64,000 nucleotides of DNA from assembly GCA_038496445.1 (NCBI GenBank), contig JALMLS010000155.1:158064-222063 (forward strand), written 5' to 3'. The notes under the pieces are model-generated. The model was given only the letters and a program-made list of their open reading frames with translations, ran no database searches and had not been told where the DNA came from. Each line of letters starts with the position of its first letter. Position 1 is the first letter of the stretch. The translations under genes were made by a program, and so were the position numbers. This DNA is from Trichosphaerium sp. ATCC 40318. Lineage: Eukaryota; Protista; Tubulinea. This document shows positions 53,630 through 64,000 of the stretch, one piece after another.

Positions 53630-54876
53630 ATGCTTGAAGGGTTCAAAGGATTACGCAAGGTAGACGTCGCAGACACTTTACAAGTCCCACAGCTAAAGTG
53701 GAGCAATAAAACTAATGAATGGGTTCCTCATGAGCCAGAGTCGCCTGACAGTATACAAATTAAAAAGCTAACGGTGTTTACCCTTAACATAATGAAAGAG
53801 CAGGTACATAGCGAATGCGCGCCTGCGAGGCCAAGAGCTGCACTAATTTACGAATTGTGCGTACTCATTAAATGAAAGACTCAAAACTGTAAAAATAGCT
53901 GACCTGTAATCCAAAATAGTTATTTGTTGACACCTACAAACAATGTTAGGTGGATCTTGTTCCCCGAATGGATGCACTGGTAAATGAGCTAAAAAAATGC
54001 GAACCGGACATTGTTGCTCTCCAAGAGAATAAGAAAACGCACAATGGTATCATACCTTAGCAAGCTTGTTAACTAACGGGCAATAGCACTGCTAATGGAG
54101 GCTCCGTATATACGAGAGCGTTACTACGTGTCTGAATTCACAGGACAACAGTACGGGTTCAAGGTACTTGTTGTGTTGTTGAGTTTACATATGGAACTAA
54201 TATGGGATAAGGTGAGCCTATTGTCCCGCTTTCCACTATCATCGTTGACACTGTACAACGTGTTGAGTACGTTGTTATTGTAAATCTATTGTTTAACACG
54301 TTAAAAACCTCCCTCAAGGCAGACAAGCCCTTGTAGGATCACTTGTTATAAACGACCAGACTTTTGCTTTTGGTAGCACGCACCTGACATCTGGTAATAA
54401 CCCTTCGCGGCGCGAGAATCAAATAGAGTTTCTATACGACAAGGTGAGTTGGGTCACAACAAACATGTTTATAATGGGGTTTTACTTAGATGAAAAGTTA
54501 CGAGAATGCCATGTTGGTAGGCGACTTTAATTACTGTCATTCAAATGATGACACCTCTGATGTACATTTACGCTATGATTATGAGGATTGTTGGCCAATC
54601 ATAAACAATACGTACACACAACTAAAACAACTGATTGGGTGACATTGTTTTTCATTTAGAGAAGGGTTCACAAGGCACAACAAACGTATTGATAGAATGT
54701 ATCTACGGCACGTGGACTACCTCACATAATTTGTTTTAATAATCTTGCTTAGGTCCGATATAGCGAGACCAATGCGTATGAAGGTAGTAGCTAAGGGAAC
54801 GGTACAGAATGCAGTACAATTCAAGTCAATCTCAGATCATTGGGGCCTTTGTGTAACGCTAAAGTTTGCACAGTGA
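53630..54876 (+). CDS. Endonuclease/exonuclease/phosphatase (EEP) family protein, TDP2-like
   Basis: TLNI, PDIVALQE, LLSRFP, STHLTS, LVGDFN, RIDR, SDHWGL. Confidence 0.88.
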
Positions 54877-54981
54877 TTTAGCTTTTTACAATCTTTAATA
54901 AAAGTGCAGCATCAAATGTTTTGCTTTAAGGCATTTTATTTTGGCTTTGTGTTAAGTTCAGAGTTAACCGGTCACTCCAGC

Positions 54982-55793
54982 ATGTTCGCATCTTCGTACA
55001 GATCCATAGTTAGAGCACAGAGACTAGCGAGTACACGCAGAAAGAACACCAGCGTTCGCGTGCGCTGTATTAACACAAAGCCCAACCAACCAATTAACTG
55101 GGATAAAACGCCTCAAGACGAGCTTGTCGCAGAAGCTCTAGGCGAAAAATATGATCCAGAAGGTGAATATACTACTAGACCTGTTCCCCCAGGCGCAGAC
55201 AGTAAAATAAAAGAGAATGCAGAGGTATTTACCAACAAAAATTATTTGTTCAAACCCAAAAGACCCGTATCTGAGGCCCTCTTGCTCACTATATTGTTAC
55301 AGGCATATTTGCGAAGAGATATGGAGGGATGGCTGTTTGGTTCACGCATTTTAAAGGAAGATAGACACGAAAAAGCAAAAAGGCAAAAAAATTCACCGTT
55401 CTTTTGTGGCGAAGACCCTGTAAGTAGCTACAAACAAACATATTTTACAATCAAAAAAAAAAAAAAAAGTATTTTGCCCTTTACAAAAAGGCTAACAAAA
55501 AATGATGTAGCTAGGACCAGGACAAACGCGACCAGCTGCTGATTGGGAAAAACCACAATACTTTTTTGTACGACATTCATTTACAAAAATTATTTTCGCA
55601 CTTTTTCGCTCACGTTGTTCTCTAGTATGCTGTTTGGGGAATTGTTATTTTGTTTATAACTGTTTTCAAAGTTGACGCCACTGGACTTCGCTGGGCGCTC
55701 GAGGAGGCACAAGAACGTTTCGTTGTCGCAGAAAACGCACGGCGTGCTGTTGAACGAGCCAAACGGGAGAGACAAGAACAACGTGGATTGTAG
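54982..55793 (+). CDS. NDUFB11: Complex I accessory subunit NDUFB11/ESSS-like
   Basis: Presequence, PGQTRPAADWEKP, TM YAVWGIVILFITVF, WALEEAQER. Confidence 0.7.
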
Positions 55794-56138
55794 GTGCAAC
55801 TTATACAAACACGACTACAAAAGGAAATGCCAAAACATACAAAAAATTATACAACAAACAGGATGCCATTTTGCACATTGTAAATTTTTATAAATATCAC
55901 AGTCAAATGGCACCAGAGCACTCGATATGCAGTTTTGTAAACCAGATAAACCAAAATTCTGAACACTTTGTTTCAGCTAACTGCTGGCAGACATGTTTGT
56001 CACAAAAGAATTGTTTCCTCAAGAGTGTAGTAGTTTTTTTTTTAACTATTCCACAATCTCGTCAATTACGTAAGTAATGATTTTTGTGTTGTAAAAAAAG
56101 AGACCGATTCGTGGTCTTTATTTTTTGACGCATTTCAC

Positions 56139-57378
56139 TTATTCGTCACGGTGTACAACGAAACAGTTGGCTTGGTTGCTTGGGAATACAAGAATGTCTG
56201 CAACTTGTACGTGCTCAGGTCTTGATGCAGCGTATACAATGTTATCTGCAATGTCCTCAGCTACGAGAGGCTTCATACCTTTGTAAGGCGCCTTTGCTTT
56301 TTCCTTATCTCCAAGACGAACAATGCTAATTAAAAATAAACAACAAAAAAAAGAACCAATTCCTCACCTGAACTCTGTCTCAACAAGCCCTGGAGCGATT
56401 TGTGTAACACGTAGTCCTGTGTTAGCCAGCTCTTGGCGCATTGCCGAGTTAATGGCGTCAACAAAGTGTTTAGAACCACAGTAGATTGAACCTCCTCTGT
56501 AGGCCTCGCGACCAGCTACACTACAAAGTGTCAAAAAAAAAAAAAACGTGGTTTGTTTATCTACTTCAATACCTTCCGACATTGATAATATGGCCACTAT
56601 TGCGCTTCTTCATATCAGGTAAAAATGTGCGGAGCATGAACAGCACTCCCTATTGCCAGGCCAACATGTTAAAGGGTGTGTACAAAAAAAAACGGTATCT
56701 GTTAGCTACCTTAACGTTGGTGTCAACTACGTTGTTGATGGCTTCTAAGGTATTATCGGCTGTGTGATTGGTGCCAAGGGCTAGCCCTAGTGACGGTTTA
56801 ACTAACACACGACTTTTCGTTCACCCTTCACCGACATACCTGCATTATTAACCTAACAATAATATTAAAACTAGTTTTTTTTTTGTTGTCCAACGAGTGA
56901 ACTTTTTTTTCGTACCAGCACGTCAATTTGTTTGAACTCTTCTGGGAGAGCGGCTTTGAGTTTTTCTACGCCGCTGGACTCTTGAATATTGAAAGCAAAG
57001 ACGAACACTTGAGTTTAATTGTTTAGTACACTAAATAAAACCACCGTTCCTTGCGAAGCAAAATTAAGCGTGCGATGCGCCTTACCTTTTACACTGTGCT
57101 TTGCTTCAATAGCTTTTTTAAGAGCTTCCAAACGCTCTTGTCTCCTGGCAGTGATAATCTACGAGATATTAATAATGATTTGTAACGTTTAAAGCTAGCG
57201 TTCTTACCAGGTTACTGCCTGATTTCGCGAAGAGCCACGCAGCTGCTTCACCAATACCTGCTGAAGCGCCTGTACTGTAAATCGCTTAGATAACAGCGTT
57301 TGCATGTTGTAAAATAACGTACATGAGTACAACTTTGCCTGTGAGTCGGGGGTATGCAGGATATGTGTCAGAAGCCAT
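56139..57378 (-). CDS. Short-chain dehydrogenase, YdfG/YMR226C-like NADP-dependent 3-hydroxy-acid dehydrogenase type
   Basis: [50 protein letters not shown]. Confidence 0.9.
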
Positions 57379-57592
57379 GTGAGTTACGAGTGATTGTTTT
57401 ACAAATGAAAAATTTTCGTTGACTTTTTTAGGCAGTTTCAGTTCCTTTTTTTTTTTTTGAAACTTCCAGAACTTTCTCAAATACGAATTCGTTGCGACGA
57501 GTAACTGACCCATTCAACATCTTTTGTGGTAATTACTATTATGTACACTGTATTGCAATTGATTTACAGGAGAAATACGACACATTTCACAC

Positions 57593-58571
57593 TTATGATG
57601 CAAGCACCTGTGCTGGTTCTGGTTGCGGGTTTTCTTCTACTTGCGTTTCTAGGCGTTTTAGTAAATGTGTTTGATAGCAAAAACCTAAAATTTCCATACC
57701 TCCAATGGGCTCTGTATTTGGCACGTCAGGCAATACAATATTGGCTTCCTGCAAAGGGAAATAAGTTGTCAATTTAATTAACAAAAAAGACTCACATCCA
57801 TTTCTTTCTCTGCTATCAGAGCTCTAAGCTCATCTTCGATTTCTTCCTCGTCACCACTTTCAAGAGCATTACCTAACATGTTTGCAACTTCCTACAAAGA
57901 CTTTTTAGCGCTAAATAGGATAAGGTATCAGTACCTCTTGATATTCCAACGCTTCTTGTGTATCTGCCATAAGATCTTCTACTTTGTCGATATCCATTTC
58001 GTCATTGATTTGTTTCAGAACCCGCGTTCCCTCTTTAATGCCAGCGAGTACTTTTTGTTCAATTTTAGCGAATTCGATTGTATCCACCTAACGATCACCG
58101 ATAAATTAAATGCTTGGTGTCACATGTCAAAAAAACTTTGTTCAAAAAATCTAGGCACCATGTCCTGCAAGTTTTGTGCTGTTTGTTCGGTTTTGATGAG
58201 CATTGATTCTTGATACTTCTTTTTGCGCAAGCACAGTAACGCCTTGTCGCGCTTACCTAGTTTTAGGCAATGTGTTATGCATAATTAAAACCAAAAAAAA
58301 AAATCACCTTGTTGAAGTAACGTTTTAGCCGCTTCTGTCTCCCTTTCCATGACGATGGTCACCTGGGGTGTAGTTGAGGTTGTGAAAGCATGCCATAAAC
58401 CCAAATATAAGAGAATAAAACACGTACCTTTTTTTTGTACTTCTGTAATTTGTCATATTGTACTTTTAAATCAAGTATAGCTTGATCTTGCGATGATACT
58501 GTACGTTGAGGTGTAACTGTGCCTTCTATTGGCCTAGGAGTTCCGAATAGGCGCCCAATAACGCCACCCAT
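57593..58571 (-). CDS. VPS20: ESCRT-III subunit VPS20/CHMP6
   Basis: MG start, QDQAILDLKVQYDKLQKY, ALLCLRKKKYQE, TIEFAKIEQKV, LPDVP. Confidence 0.9.
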
Positions 58572-58709
58572 ATCTTTGAGAACGGCTTTGTTAGGTAATT
58601 GAGTTAAAAAACAACACCAAAAAAAAAAAAACATCTTTCAAAAGTGGTCAGCGTCGGTTCAAGTTTTTATTCGAATAGCACCTTACCAACAACTGCACAA
58701 ACGGTTTAG

Positions 58710-59846
58710 ATGATGGAAGAGGAGGTATCAGAGCTCTCTAATACCACTTTTGGTACAGCAGGGTACACTGATGCCGAAAGATATGAAATACAGGCAATGT
58801 TAGACATACAACTACCTGAGGACGACGTTTCGACGCGCCCTGGTCCCGCTGGGAGTACGTAAAGTAGATTTGCTTTTATTTTGCTGTAATTTTGAAAATT
58901 TATTCCTGTAAAGAGAATGTGTCGTACATCACCATTGATACAGCGCTCAAAAATGCAAACAAAGCGTTTGGGATTTCAGGTTGGTCGAGCGAAATGAAGT
59001 CGTTTACACAAGATTATGTACGAGGTCGCTACCAACAATTCGCTGCATAATCCATACCGCCGTTTTTTAGCGCCAGTTGTGTGAACAAAAAAAAACCAAA
59101 CAAGTCACCTGTCAATCAAATCATTTATTTTTATTGCAGCACTACCAAGATGCTGAAGGGCGTTGGAGTTGTGGTTACTCTTCAGTTGTTAGAATAACGC
59201 TAAAAGATGGCTCTTTTCGCGAGGATGTTGGTACAAAGAATTATTTGATTTTGACAAAAATTCAAGAAATATCCAGCATGTACATGTTAGCTTACTCACT
59301 GTTAGGCTACGGTAATGCAGTCAAGAGCAGCTCGTATGCAGAGGCTGTAGAGAAGGCAAAAAAAGTAAGTTTTTGTTATTATTGTTGATTAACACTAACG
59401 CGTCATAACCACAAGACAGCAGCATCAGATGGCCTAAAGAGGTAAAAAACCCCCAAAAGTCTGCTCTCCTTAAACTTACTTCTACAAGGGCATTGCGGCA
59501 ATTCGGTCCATACACTGGCAACAATGTCAGACAACCAAATGGCCGTGCGTTTAAATTGCGCTTCAAGTTTAGTTATAACTAACAGTGTTGTGTAGAATTC
59601 TCGAGAAAACGACCACGGCCGAATAATTACACAAAGAGCCCCGAACCAGCTCAATTCGTGCAATCAAACGGTGTTCATCCGCCTGCGCCTCAAACGAGCT
59701 ATACACCAAACATGAAACAACAGCCATTACAAGGGGGTGTTGCACCATACCAGAGCCCAAATGGCCAGAGAAGACAAGTGCTCAATCAACAACAGACCAT
59801 GCGACACGGTTATAACAATGGTGTGCGCTCGTTTAACCGCAACTAA
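58710..59846 (+). CDS. RAD52: RAD52/RAD22-family ssDNA-annealing protein, short form
   Basis: STRPGPAG..VSYI, ANKAFGISGWSS, VRITLKDGSFREDVGYG, EKAKKTAASDGLKRALRQFG. Confidence 0.9.
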
Positions 59847-60131
59847 AATACTCGTTATTGTATGGGAAAAGGGCACTGTGCTTGTTGTAAAGTGTAAAGT
59901 AAAATATTAAATTGTACATAAAAACTTTGTGTTTTTTTTTTTTTTGGTGAAATGTTTGTAATACAATCACGTGCAACTGCTTTATTTGTAAAGTGGTTCG
60001 TAAACACTGTTTAATGTTGCTGTTTTGTGACGCTATTGAGAACGCCACGAGAATATACCAAAAATGAAAAGTAGTCGTTGACTTTTTGTGTAAATAGTAT
60101 TTACTTTTGAAAAAGCGTTATTTTTGTTGTA

Positions 60132-61451
60132 ATGTCAGAAGCTACAGCAGAACAAACGCCAGAAGAATTGCGCGCACAGTTACAGGAGTATGATGAAGAA
60201 CTGCGACTCGTGGAAGAAGCCTTAGAAGATGATAAAGACAATAAGGAACTAAAAGAAACCCGAAATACGCTTTTAGAGTTTGTTAATCTCACAAAAGACA
60301 TTTTACGGGCTACAGAGCCACAGGAGGATAAAAAGGATACTAAAAAACCAGCGGAAAAGGCTGAAACGCTCAAATATGCGCTTGCGAGAGGCCTTGGCAT
60401 TGGTACAGAATGCCACGCGCGGTATAGGTGCGATTAGCTCCAACGTGAATTTCCAAAGCGTTCTCTTGTGAATACTGACTGTACACAGTGATGGTAAATG
60501 GTATAAGGCGACCATAGATGATATTACGGGTGCGAAGATGTGTTTTTTTTTTATTTGCTGAAAAAAACAACCGGTTCATGTTGCGTTGTATTTTTTTGGG
60601 CGCTTTTTTTTTTCCAAGGCCTGTGCATAAAAATTGAAACAATCTCTTTGACATGGGCGTGTAAATAAATTTGCCTGAATATCTTGGATTTCAAAAACCG
60701 ACTTACCAATTCTCGTTGCTAGACACTGGGTTTGAAATAACCTTTCAAGACTATGCGGAATCTACAGAAGTGACGATGGAGAATATAAGAAAGCACGAGC
60801 TTATTGCCACAGGCAAACGTAAACGTGTTGTAGAACCTTCTGAAGGTGATGGTATTCAGTTGGCGATTCCTGACAGGCTCAAGATACAACCAAATGACTC
60901 AGAGCAGGTAAGAAAACGCAAAAAGCGTGAGAAGAAAACCATAAAACAAAACAACAAACGAAGGTACACTTTCTCCTCCAAGTTTTTTACCATCTTTTTG
61001 CCACCCTTCTTGCCTTCATTTTTTTATCATTATTATTTTTTTGACTACGGCAAGCACATCGTTGTTTTGTTAAGTAGTTACGTACCTACCACCAAGGTCA
61101 AAAACAAAGAAGCATTATTGAATTCATTATTCAGGGTTCAAGAGGCTGAGAGGAATGCAAGCAAAAAGAGTTGGCAAAATTTTGTAAAGAAACAAAAGCG
61201 AAAAACAGGTTTTATGACTAATGTCAAGAGAAGCTCGCAATTTTCAACACCTGAAGGCGCAGGAAAGGTAACTGCTAACGAGTAAAAGGGTATTCAATCA
61301 ATTAACTTGCTCGTTGTAGGTTGGCGTGGTAAATGCTGGGAAGGGAATGACTAAAAATCGCGAGACATTGTACACCCCAAAAGCGATAACCACAATGCCT
61401 CCAGGTTGGAAACCAAAACAATCGCGTAGGCGTAGCAGGGATCGGTATTAG
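60132..61451 (+). CDS. SMNDC1: Splicing factor SPF30/SMNDC1 (Tudor domain)
   Basis: LQEYDEELRLVEEAL, CHARYSDGKWYKATI..ITFQDY (Tudor), IPDRLKIQPND, KKSWQNF, STPEGAGKVGVVNAGKGMT. Confidence 0.88.
60964..61134 (+). repeat. 171-nt SPF30 intron; copy A of an inverted repeat pair
   Basis: GTACAC...TTCAG; removal restores NNKRR|VQEAER; matches the reverse complement of 62623-62786. Confidence 0.92.
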
Positions 61452-61659
61452 AGGTAGAGACTGTGATCACAACCCAAACACTTGTAACAAAAAATTCCAA
61501 AAATTTAATTAAAAAAATGTAACATTTGTGATGCAAACGTGGTTCTTCGTGGGTGCGTAGGCTACATCTAATTCGCCCACGGATTGATAAAAATTGAAAA
61601 GCGTAACGTTAAGTCGGACTACTGCTGAACTTTATCACTTTTAGCGTTGCCATTCCACT

Positions 61660-62979
61660 ATGAAGGTGTGGTGGCGCGAGACCATTGTTGGCGAGACTGT
61701 TACACACGGTCTCGCCAAAAAATTACGCGTATTAACGCTTGATGATTGGTATTCTGTGTCACAACGACGATTTTCAATTGAAGGGAGGACCGTAATCAAG
61801 TACGCTTGTTTAAGAGGGCTTCAATTATTTGTACACGCGTGTGCGGTTTAACAGATATTTTAGCCATTACAAGACGCTGCCGAGAGCACTGAGACATATA
61901 TATCCGCACTACAATTGGCGCACACAAAAATTTAGGTACGCAGGCGTTTTTCGATGTTGTTGGTAGTGTTGCTGGCATACAGGCTCACAGGTGTTTATCA
62001 TTCGAGTAGGCGAGTGCCTCAAAATCACTGGGGTAGCTCAAAAAACCATCGGACGGCCTGGGACAGCGCAGCCGCAGAACTGGGCGTCAAGGTTGCTACT
62101 GACTGGCTCGGTGTATCGGGCAAGCAGATGGAAGAAGCAGGTATTATGGGCCTAATAGCATTGCAGTACGTTGGAGGTCACGTGATTAGTTAAATTGGGA
62201 AGGCCTTTTGTAACAGAAAAGCTGAAAAAACCCCCCAAACCACAGTGTCACACGTGCACTCGTGTATAAAGCGTAGTATTCATGCGGTCTGATAGGTTTG
62301 GCGGATCTTTACACAAAGCAGTTGTAAGCATGCATCCAGAATACAAGTGGCCGCAGTTCAAATATCCTTCTGGTCATTGGGAAAATCTCTCAAATCAGAG
62401 AAAAGCGTTTGATAGCAAGGCAGCAGAGTTAGGTTTAACCACATTTGATATGTGGTATGATTATGGTGTCCGTAAAGTGCGTGATCTTGGAAGTGTATTG
62501 GCACTCAAGTATGTTTGGCAGCCTGAATGGCTGGTTAGTATTCGCATTATAGCAAGCTTATTTGTTTTTTTAGGTAAACTGTTCCATTGCATTGGCATTA
62601 CATTCAATCTATCCAGAGCATCCTGAATAATGAATTAAACAAAGGCACCTTTGTTTTTGACCTTGATGTTAGGTACGTAACTACTTAACAAAACAACGAT
62701 GTGCTTGCCGTAGTCAAACTAAACATAAAAAAATGAAGGCAAGAAGGGTGGCAAAAAGATGGTAAAAAACTCAGGAGAAAGTGTAGCGCTTCGTGCTGGT
62801 GGTTTATTGCCATATTACCCAGCTTTATTGAAGCACATTTATCCTCAATTCAACTTTAATTGGCAAGCTTTTGGCCAAGCCCATAAAAAATCAGAACAAC
62901 AGTACATAATTATTTGGCACATTTTCCATTAATTTTATGTAGTGTATTGTTGCAATTAACACAACAATTGTTTAAATGA
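61660..62979 (+). pseudogene. Repeat protein gene (DWY..V / YPxxxW..F..P..HW..N.R repeats), apparently disrupted in its 3' half
   Basis: Three to four ~65-aa repeats; apparent frameshift/stop at ~62575, stop TAA at 62628 inside an insertion, repeat frame resumes at ~62789, ends at the AT-rich boundary. Confidence 0.6.
62623..62786 (-). repeat. Inverted copy B of the SPF30 intron
   Basis: Two blocks of ~47-48 nt are exact reverse complements of copy A. Confidence 0.92.
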
Positions 62980-63357
62980 CAAATATTGGCAAATGTACTA
63001 TAAATATTGTAAATTATAACAAATATCTATCAACTCATAATAACAGAAATTACAAAAAATAATAGGATTGGTTATGTTAAAATAAGTTAAATAACTAATA
63101 GTTTTGTCAATTTTTAACTAAAATATACAGTAAAGTAAAACAAATATTACAAATAATACATGATAAAGTCAAATAATTATAAAAGTGTACAAAACCACAA
63201 ATATAAGACAAAAACATTACACACTCAAAAATTCCATAAAGCCTTTCAATGTAACCCTAGCACTAGCTGAAAATAATATAATTTAAATAAATCTTTAAAC
63301 TTTACCTTAATAAAAAAATAAGTGATATTATCATAAATCAATCAATTTAAAGTAAGG
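62980..63357. other. Extremely AT-rich, G-poor non-coding tract at the subtelomeric boundary
   Basis: Abrupt composition change, no ORFs. Confidence 0.75.
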
Positions 63358-63490
63358 CCCTAACCCTAATACAACTTAGGGTTGTAAACCTAACCCTAAC
63401 CCTAATAGAATCATCACAAATAAGCCCTAACCCTAATCCACAATAATATCAATTAGGGTTATACCCTAAAATCCAATTAGGGTTAGGGAC
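63358..63490. repeat. Short telomere-type CCCTAA/TTAGGG arrays in mixed orientation
   Basis: CCCTAACCCTAA at 63358, 63394 and 63425; TTAGGG at 63376, 63453 and 63477. Confidence 0.85.
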
Positions 63491-63921
63491 TATGTGATTT
63501 TTATTCGCCGAATATCGTCCTGTACGGGCCATCGCGGGTAGGTGCAGAAATGCCAAAGACATTTTTGTGCTTGAATTAATATGGTGCTTCATCCTATACT
63601 ATGTTGTATTAAATACACACATAAAATTATGCTAGGGTTGTGTTGACATTGGGTATTTTTTTCCTTACAAGTTTACAATTGACTACTATTGAGCTAGGGT
63701 TAGGGACTATGTGATTTTTATTCGCCGAATATCGTCCTGTACGGGCCATCACGGGTAGGTGCAGAAATGCCAAAGACATTTTTGTGCTTGAATTAATATG
63801 GCGCTTCATCCTATACTATGTTGCATTAAATACACACATAAAATTATGCTAGGGTTGTGTTGACATTGTGTATTTTTTTCCTTACAAGTTTACAATTGAC
63901 TACTTTGAGCTAGGGTTAGGG
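63478..63921 (+). repeat. Subtelomeric tandem repeat, ~217-bp unit, two near-identical copies followed by a degenerate partial copy
   Basis: GGACTATGTGATTTTTATTCGCCG at 63487 and 63704; units are punctuated by TAGGGTTAGGG. Confidence 0.92.
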
Positions 63922-64000
63922 CTAGGGTTGAGTTGACATAAGTTTTTTTTTTTTTACAAGTTACATTACTGATAATTATTTTATCCAAGGGCCATCACTA

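Follow-up and report, generated by a model that had tools for sequence, protein, structure and literature searches.

Towards its end, the 64,000-nt stretch of DNA analysed here (the window) carries two adjacent forward-strand genes, the splicing-factor gene SPF30 and a gene from a very large family of orphan repeat proteins, followed by telomere-like and subtelomeric sequence (Table 1). Intron 3 of SPF30 (copy A) has an inverted twin (copy B) lodged 1.5 kb away in the repeat gene, where it lies antisense to the coding sequence and truncates the reading frame.

Table 1. Features of the SPF30 locus, the neighbouring repeat gene and the chromosome end (positions in the window)
Feature	Position	Strand	Basis or remark
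SPF30 (SMNDC1-type Tudor splicing factor) gene	60132-61451	+	Transcript contigs L021 and L022, and orthologues
SPF30 exons	60132-60427, 60489-60529, 60723-60963, 61135-61267, 61320-61451	+	
SPF30 intron 1 (putative), 61 nt, GTGCGA..CACAG	60428-60488	+	Removal restores the Tudor motif C-x-A-x-Y-S-x-D-G-x-W-Y of orthologues
SPF30 intron 2, 193 nt, T-rich	60530-60722	+	Spliced out of both transcripts
ACGAAG	60958-60963	+	3' end of SPF30 exon 3; this hexamer also flanks copy B
Copy A (SPF30 intron 3), 171 nt, GTACAC..TTCAG, phase 2	60964-61134	+	Spliced out exactly in L021
SPF30 intron 4, 52 nt	61268-61319	+	Spliced out of both transcripts
Neighbour gene, very large orphan repeat-protein family	61660-62630	+	Predicted model, 216 aa, ends ...IYPEH-PE-stop
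Neighbour exons (model)	61660-61799, 61855-61935, 62010-62165, 62296-62512, 62574-62630	+	
Copy B, inverted intron twin	62622-62788	-	Antisense to neighbour gene; repeat search, BLASTN, alignment
Stranded C-terminal fragment of neighbour gene, LRAGGLLPYYPALLKHIYPQFNFNWQAF..KKSEQQ	62789-62932	+	Typical family C-terminus
Chromosome end: CCCTAA and TTAGGG tracts (telomere-like, both orientations) and a 217-nt subtelomeric repeat in two copies	63340-64000	.	

SPF30 and its third intron

The two transcript contigs behind the SPF30 model come from the same strain and match the window at 100% identity; the poly(A) site lies near 61537, and L022 ends in poly(A). A word search returned no SPF30 orthologues; phmmer detected 340 relatives, and for several of these the source gives the name 'survival-of-motor-neuron-related-splicing factor 30'. 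The orthologues have TUDOR/SMN_Tudor matches, and in the alignment the window protein shows the Tudor domain together with the conserved C-terminal IP..L.I.P.DSE ... W..F ... GKVGV, while single exons of the window gene have no Pfam match of their own. The spliced protein aligns without gaps with 8 SPF30 orthologues, and the gene is single copy in the genome. The intron 1 entered in Table 1 is a predicted one, kept in both assembled transcripts, which are collinear with the genome there.

Copy A is absent exactly from L021 (protein P0002) and present in L022 (protein P0001). The exact removal of 171 nt from one transcript bears out the original prediction that this segment is a genuine spliced intron of SPF30; its description as unusually long does not hold for this gene, in which intron 2 is longer still (193 nt). 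Retained copy A adds 57 codons that are open in frame, and such an open frame arises in 4.4% of shuffles. Its composition (T 40%, A 26%) is close to that of intron 2 (T 39%, A 26%), the exons being A-rich, and the trinucleotide AGG occurs at both of its ends.

The nearest SPF30 relatives, including those of Clydonella and Dermamoeba, are transcriptome sequences, and their affinities point to Discosea. All six orthologue genes that were looked up are single uninterrupted ORFs, which ORF-based gene calling may partly explain, and nearly all of 54 metagenomic SPF30 loci are uninterrupted across the intron 3 site. In the four clearly split metagenomic loci (L073, L079, L082 and L083), a small set, no intron position is common with those of the window gene; the intron in L083 falls 8 nt from the intron 3 site, and there are perhaps nearby introns in L079 and L082.

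An inverted twin in a subtelomeric repeat gene

In a global alignment, 60964-61134 (+) and the reverse complement of 62623-62788 (-) agree at 152 positions and differ by 11 substitutions and 5 indels, an identity of 93% over aligned bases and of 87% over all columns (11 gap columns in the 5 indels), in line with the 85-90% first estimated by eye. A repeat search recovers the twins as two pairs of inverted arms (61030-61116/62642-62728, 87 nt, 90%; 60958-61032/62720-62794, 75 nt, 83%), and BLASTN over the whole genome aligns copy A with copy B at 88% and E=2.7e-55, a similarity far beyond chance. Within the 64-kb window, repeats of at least 60 nt are confined to the twin pair and the subtelomeric tandem repeat. 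Differences between the copies are clustered: two stretches, of 47 and 49 nt, are identical, a pattern with P=0.004 even on the assumption of only 12 events.

The limits of homology had first been placed at the 3' splice site and within a few nucleotides of the 5' site, and the alignment agrees. At one limit the similarity stops at the 3' splice site, with TTCAG|G in both copies. At the other it extends through ACGAAG, followed by G-TACAC in copy A vs CGC-TACAC in copy B, so that the intron's 5' G is replaced by CGC and copy B has no 5' GT on either reading. The six-of-six flank match at this one junction has a P of about 0.003, and there are only three other ACGAAG sites on either strand within 54000-64000. 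Past the hexamer 4 of 15 bases match in an ungapped comparison, limiting the claim of a shared flank to the 6-mer. Beside copy B these six bases may belong to the host gene, as the L-R codons that precede the GG motif of the family, instead of having been copied from the exon; the stranded C-terminal fragment of the neighbour gene begins with CTTCGT, their reverse complement. The copies have diverged by 12%, so the junctions may no longer be those first formed.

The repeat-protein family of the neighbour gene numbers at least 120-150 loci in the genome. It has no Pfam match, and an atlas comparison gives leads only, at scores below 0.9. Three of the four introns of the gene model begin GTACG; a search of the protein collection, confined to a set range of lengths, found no transcript-derived protein of this gene. 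Copy B sits between the native codons IYPEH and LRAGG, where it replaces about 48 codons (~144 nt) of one repeat unit with a gain of ~167 nt, and it supplies the stop codon of the truncated ORF (...IYPEH-P-E-TAA, 62628-62630). The antisense orientation, the partial loss of one repeat unit and the disruption of a subtelomeric repeat gene were thus read correctly from the start. Decayed repeat-family coding sequence was considered as an identity for copy B and rejected, there being no unit motifs in three frames. At the DNA level the genome has one copy of the neighbour locus, SPF30 too is single copy, and no empty-site allele or paralogue was found.

The contig ends at 64000, and the 217-mer listed in Table 1 is also found near the ends of many other contigs. 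The locus of copy B is within 1.3 kb of this repeat-rich subtelomeric sequence.

Origin of the twin

The pair had been interpreted as candidate members of an introner-like mobile family, and a genome BLASTN had been set beforehand as the test. BLASTN with either copy as the query (E up to 10) and a search with a 40-mer core (no more than 3 mismatches) found exactly two copies, both on the same contig (C98) and 1.5 kb apart; with only two copies in the 70.3-Mb assembly, the mobile-family reading fails. Neither terminal inverted repeats, internal inverted repeats nor a target-site duplication were found at either copy. There is no stable fold (MFE z-scores of -0.75 for copy A and -0.47 for the + strand of copy B) and no Rfam match in the intron, and the idea of a functional RNA inside it was rejected. 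What survives of the earlier interpretation is a spliced intron with a disruptive antisense twin. The locus is a well-documented chromosome-end oddity produced by a single copying event, and neither a new class of element nor a family of jumping introns. Locally templated break repair and reinsertion of an excised intron, both raised previously as alternatives, are now the leading explanations.

The reading to which we give about an even chance is that copy B, inverted and dead, was copied once from SPF30 intron 3 and taken up as filler during break repair in a dispensable subtelomeric neighbour. A break would have cost the neighbour gene about 144 nt of coding sequence, and about 167 nt of filler, copied from SPF30 at a distance of 1.5 kb, would have closed the gap. 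The broken end ...ACGAAG would have annealed to the identical six bases that end SPF30 exon 3, and an error-prone polymerase would have extended it across the intron; a join without homology would then have linked the new strand to the other end, beside the IYPEH codons. We infer the direction of copying (A to B), the break, the priming by microhomology and the type of template (DNA vs intron-containing or excised RNA). Several observations count in favour of filler repair. The clustering of differences between the copies is expected from low-fidelity repair synthesis, and with more than 120 loci in the host family the loss of one member should be neutral. The sense-strand composition of copy A is intron-like, resembling intron 2 and not the exons; subtelomeric repeats and telomere-like tracts adjoin the locus; and the neighbour gene models cleanly apart from the stretch that copy B replaces. 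Two features count against it. A DNA-templated patch has no reason to begin at an exon-intron boundary and to end at a 3' splice site, a double coincidence that we estimate at 1e-4 to 1e-5, and the second junction of copy B is without microhomology.

That the shared segment ends at both SPF30 splice sites would be explained if the excised, debranched intron had been reverse-transcribed and captured at a nearby break, or had been reverse-spliced into an antisense transcript and copied back; either route would yield a copy of the intron complete from end to end. Such an RNA-derived reinsertion, which we consider rather unlikely, also explains why copy B sits exactly between native neighbour codons, and it places the irregular end (CGC for G) at the 5' end of the intron, where a cDNA would finish. 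Random orientation is expected under it, target deletion is expected for capture at a break, and the AAG|G flanks are protosplice-like. However, RNA capture gives no reason, in a genome of 70 Mb, for the copy to lie 1.5 kb from the intron unless it took place in cis; the six bases ACGAAG would have to match by chance (P about 0.003); and copy B carries neither poly(A) nor a target duplication. Reverse splicing in particular leaves the loss of 144 nt at the target unaccounted for and needs an antisense transcript, whereas no RNA evidence was found for the neighbour gene. The splice-site limits would follow, through selection, if copying had run from B to A. In that case the repair of a break in SPF30 exon 3/4 would have been primed from ...ACGAAG on the neighbour, with about 170 nt of non-coding filler copied into SPF30 as an insert that was in frame, open and spliceable. 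On this reading the primer would carry the 6-nt match at its 3' end, and AGG at both ends of copy A, its open 57 codons (the 4.4% of shuffles being reduced by a further factor of 1/3 for length), its retention in one of two assembled isoforms and the lack of an unambiguous orthologue with an intron at the exact site, among the few intron-bearing loci compared, all speak for a gain of this kind. We nevertheless regard it as unlikely. Copy B is foreign to its host and breaks a repeat unit between native codons, so that one more event, itself unexplained, would be required for its origin, and only chance would make the copied tract match the foreign segment. A priori, an insertion is also far less likely to be fixed in an exon of a single-copy splicing-factor gene than to strike, neutrally, one of more than 120 paralogues; the T-rich strand bias fits an established sense-strand intron; and L083, perhaps with L079 and L082, has an intron near the site, 8 nt off in L083.

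A narrower form of the mobile-element proposal, a low-copy, non-autonomous introner-like element present in both genes after a local hop, with its own splice signals and a target preference for ACGAAG|G, is decidedly unlikely. It accommodates a shared segment that behaves as an insert in both contexts between the same seven flanking bases (ACGAAG...G), and local reinsertion is common for cut-and-paste elements; but the copy number of two, the missing termini, target-site duplication, fold and Rfam match described above and the failure to find a 29-mer core in metagenome contigs all weigh against it, and insertion leaves the missing 144 nt of host sequence unexplained. An assembly artefact is highly improbable. 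The assembled copy B lies within 1.3 kb of a repeat-rich subtelomeric contig end, yet fold-back or chimeric artefacts give identical copies, whereas these two differ by 11 substitutions and 5 indels, and on both sides copy B is bordered by unique, single-copy coding sequence typical of the family.

Comparison with introners, intron transposition and filler DNA

The origin of new spliceosomal introns and intron mobility have been argued mostly from indirect evidence (PMC3443670). The locus offers a clean two-copy case: it pairs a working intron of a single-copy splicing-factor gene with a dead copy that lies antisense in the dispensable gene beside it, and the shared tract stops at the splice sites. 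It is possible, though doubtful, that the twin is the natural footprint of a spliceosomal intron acting as a discrete moving unit, either through re-entry of RNA or cDNA beside its own gene or through the recent birth of the SPF30 intron from neighbour filler. If true, either would document in a single event, rare and datable, a step of intron transposition or gain that is mostly inferred indirectly. Were the order of copying known, the pair would provide a single dated example of intron-borrowing break repair, of DNA re-entry, or of birth from neighbouring filler.

DNA-transposon introners carry transposon termini and a target-site duplication. Introner-like elements are known as hundreds of near-identical copies in unrelated genes of one genome (PMC3609843, PMC4540971); they coincide with introns, are spliced and are co-linear with transcription (PMC3443670), and those of fungi have a stable predicted secondary structure (PMC3609843). 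Copy A resembles the introners of Micromonas, fungi and others (PMC3443670, PMC3609843, PMC4540971) in being a spliced intron of more than typical length that ends where the repeated element ends, and it is co-linear with transcription; copy B is antisense to its host and lacks a 5' GT. The pair is unlike introners in numbering two copies against tens to thousands, in the disruptive antisense position of copy B, and in having neither a stable predicted structure nor transposon termini.

Intron transposition, by reverse splicing followed by reverse transcription and recombination or by capture of intron cDNA, has been reviewed (PMC3443670), and intron circles and transposition have also been discussed (PMC10996645). 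The twin resembles such events in comprising a whole intron, end to end, at an unrelated site with AAG|G-like flanks. Reverse splicing would place a complete intron with exact GT..AG ends at the new site, sense to a transcript and at no cost in target sequence. At copy B the 3' end is exact (TTCAG). The twin differs in that the 5' G has become CGC, with loss of the 5' GT, leaving copy B non-functional as an intron and antisense to the only recognisable gene. Some 48 target codons (~144 nt) are gone, the source is 1.5 kb away, and reverse transcription and an antisense transcript are hypothetical here.

Filler or templated insertion at a double-strand break corresponds to the class 'intron gain during DSBR' (PMC3443670), and in the DSBR section of that review, citing Gorbunova and Levy, insertion with target deletion is given as typical of filler-DNA repair. 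The locus resembles filler insertions arising by NHEJ, microhomology-mediated repair or template switching in being a single event with one donor-copy pair, in combining an insertion (~167 nt) with a target deletion (~144 nt) at a presumed break, and in its nearby donor, inverted copy, 6-nt microhomology at one junction, clustered copying errors and subtelomeric setting. Ordinary templated insertions have arbitrary ends, whereas here the donor tract is a whole intron, matching it to within 0-1 nt at one end and abutting the last base of the exon at the other.

Copy A as a spliced intron of SPF30

Copy A, the third intron of SPF30 (see table), is a genuine intron of that gene. Two proteins, both from a single JGI sample (3300016894), were retrieved by word search: P0002, in which copy A (171 nt) is spliced out to give ...KQNNKRR|VQEAERN..., and P0001, in which copy A is kept as 57 in-frame codons. 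Their transcript contigs (L021 and L022) show 100% identity to the window and are therefore transcripts of this strain; alignment of transcript to window places the splice junction at exactly 60963|61135, and the poly(A) end of L022 lies near 61537. Among 340 relatives found by phmmer, some named SPF30 by their sources, eight were aligned across the junction, where the spliced protein is ungapped and the retained form shows a 57-residue insert relative to all eight. The original prediction of a spliced SPF30 intron is thus borne out, whereas its description as unusually long does not hold for this gene, since intron 2 spans 193 nt; copy A also shares the T-rich sense-strand composition of intron 2. 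SPF30 is present once in the genome and is the last conserved gene before the subtelomeric zone.

Features of the inverted twin and its two host genes
Feature	Window position	Strand	Remarks
SPF30 intron 2	60530-60722	+	193 nt, absent from both L021 and L022
SPF30 intron 3 (copy A)	60964-61134	+	171 nt, removed in P0002/L021
SPF30 intron 4	61268-61319	+	absent from both L021 and L022
Neighbour gene model	61660-62630	+	five exons, 216 aa, 3' of the SPF30 poly(A) site
Resumed C-terminus of neighbour gene	from 62789	+	LRAGGLLPYYPALLKHIYPQFNFNWQAF..KKSEQQ, family-typical, 3' of copy B

The inferred 61-nt intron 1 (60428-60488) is kept in both L021 and L022, with a stop codon (60435-60437) ahead of the Tudor domain; its retention reflects either inefficient or regulated splicing, or assembler bias toward unspliced molecules. 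Copy A comprises exactly 57 codons and has no stop in the SPF30 frame, a property of only 4.4% of shuffled versions (with an extra factor of 1/3 for length); the insert encoded by the P0001 transcript would be hydrophobic, 57 residues long and placed in a conserved linker.

The SPF30 relatives nearest to this one come from transcriptomes (Clydonella sp. ATCC 50884, Dermamoeba algensis and one further EukProt set) and suggest a discosean amoeba as the source organism. All six orthologue genes looked up are single uninterrupted ORFs, which may partly reflect ORF-based gene calling, and nearly all of 54 metagenomic loci are uninterrupted across the copy A site. Four of these loci are clearly split: L073 has the site without an intron, L083 has an intron 8 nt downstream of it in another phase (ungapped alignment), and introns close to it in L079 and L082 cannot be placed in register. 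No match to the other intron positions of this gene was seen in the four either, so the lack of a match at the copy A site is uninformative on intron age. The introns of the L083 orthologue (L083:140-770), including the one 8 nt from the copy A position, consist almost wholly of ATG/ATC trinucleotide repeats.

An inverted twin in a subtelomeric repeat gene

The inverted twin of this intron, copy B, is real and statistically solid. A repeat search of the window finds adjoining inverted arms (61030-61116/62642-62728, 87 nt, 90%; 60958-61032/62720-62794, 75 nt, 83%), and apart from these the 64 kb contain only one repeat of at least 60 nt, a tandem repeat of 217 nt where the contig ends. Aligned globally, 60964-61134 and the reverse complement of 62623-62788 match at 152 positions and differ by 11 substitutions and 5 indels (11 gap columns); BLASTN over the whole assembly gives 88% identity (E=2.7e-55), in agreement with the predicted pair of ~85-90% identity lying 1.5 kb apart. 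The predicted limits also stand: one end of the homology lies at TTCAG|G, and at the other ACGAAG is common to both copies, followed by G-TACAC in A and CGC-TACAC in B. The 6-nt junction match has P of about 0.003 by simulation, and only three further ACGAAG sites occur in 10 kb on either strand. Differences between the copies are grouped in a small number of patches around identical stretches of 47 and 49 nt (P=0.004, even if as few as 12 events are assumed). The shared tract is insert-like in both genes, its ends being the splice sites in SPF30 and falling exactly between native codons in the neighbour gene.

The neighbour gene model has four GT..AG introns of 55-130 nt, three of which start GTACG. 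Its protein is coherent and built of units of ~76-78 aa, from one YPxxxW to the next, with the pattern W...N.R.F.D..A..LG....DWY...GG..LL..Y.gS..AL.. and, in the family, a characteristic C-terminus (W.W..F....KK..Q). This very large family, whose members have diverged widely, numbers at least 120-150 loci in the genome, the closest paralogue standing at 39-46% identity; it has no match in Pfam, and atlas leads are weak (amoebozoan hypothetical proteins and DUF4046). A search of the protein collection, limited by protein length, yielded no protein derived from a transcript of the gene. As predicted, a stop follows closely on YPEH and part of a unit is missing: the CAT codon of ...IYPEH ends at 62621, the reading frame continues for two codons into copy B to a stop at 62628-62630, and the last unit lacks ~48 codons (~144 nt), with ~167 nt of inverted intron sequence in that place. 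Family unit motifs are absent from all three frames of copy B, which is therefore foreign to the gene.

On the + strand of the window (62671-62680) copy B carries AG|GTACGTAAC, a 5' splice-site motif of the GTACG type shared with three of the four introns of the neighbour gene. The motif is an accident of the near-palindrome TTACGTA of the SPF30 intron; any read-through transcript could use it as a cryptic donor.

The locus lies at a chromosome end, the contig stopping at 64000. Telomere-like CCCTAA and TTAGGG tracts in both orientations, from about 63350 on, and two copies of the 217-nt repeat lie within 63340-64000. This 217-nt repeat also occurs on 15 or more further contigs, in most cases within a few kb of the contig end, and is therefore a family of subtelomeric repeats. 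That the telomere-like tracts are of mixed orientation suggests earlier breakage followed by rejoining here.

Origin of the twin

We favour, at about even chances, a one-off filler copied from A to B, most likely a single repair-associated copy of the intron into a dispensable subtelomeric gene, with either DNA or RNA allowed as template. A DNA-templated patch, copied in inverted orientation from the SPF30 locus 1.5 kb away and accompanied by a deletion in the neighbour gene, would explain the distance, the inversion, the lost codons and the ACGAAG match, and would attribute the clustered differences to error-prone repair synthesis or patchy conversion. It gives no reason for the tract to start at the last exon base and stop at the 3' splice site, a double coincidence we estimate at 1e-4 to 1e-5.

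That coincidence vanishes if a discrete unit moved, although luck or cis effects must then account for the ACGAAG match and for a distance of only 1.5 kb. The unit may have been the excised intron, reinserted as RNA or cDNA, which is the leading rival but improbable; a low-copy mobile element in both genes ranks third and is distinctly less probable, having two copies only and no termini. Ranked between these is intron gain in SPF30 from copy B, which incurs the same penalty as the DNA patch, because the extent of the copied tract must then equal that of the foreign segment within the neighbour gene. An assembly artefact at copy B is very unlikely, because the copies differ at 22 columns. Likelihood alone does not separate the models, and the choice rests on prior plausibility. 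Fixation of 171 inserted nt within an exon of a splicing factor encoded once in the genome is far harder than that of a neutral hit on a single member of a set of >120 paralogues, located at a chromosome end prone to breaks, and the A-to-B filler is favoured for this reason. The coincidence of the tract ends with both splice sites stays unexplained and is the sole feature sustaining the more interesting reading, that a spliceosomal intron was moved as a discrete unit or arose only recently, which we regard as doubtful.

Comparison with introners

The original prediction had proposed a mobile, introner-like family. BLASTN of the whole genome with A and with B (E up to 10) returned no further copies, and a 40-mer core search allowing up to three mismatches found only the same two sites; a 29-mer core had no hit among metagenome contigs, a result of little weight since the same collection also missed L022. 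The copies have neither terminal inverted repeats nor the flanking direct duplication that target-site duplication, advanced as support for a family, would leave. The twin has no Rfam match, the folds of its two copies are no more stable than those of shuffled sequences (z = -0.75 and -0.47), and the assembly holds no empty-site allele or paralogous locus. An introner family, with two places only in the genome, no termini, no duplication and no stable fold, is not supported. Many copies and an orientation shared with transcription define introners, together with stable structure in fungi (PMC3443670, PMC3609843, PMC4540971), and the twin differs from them in all three respects.
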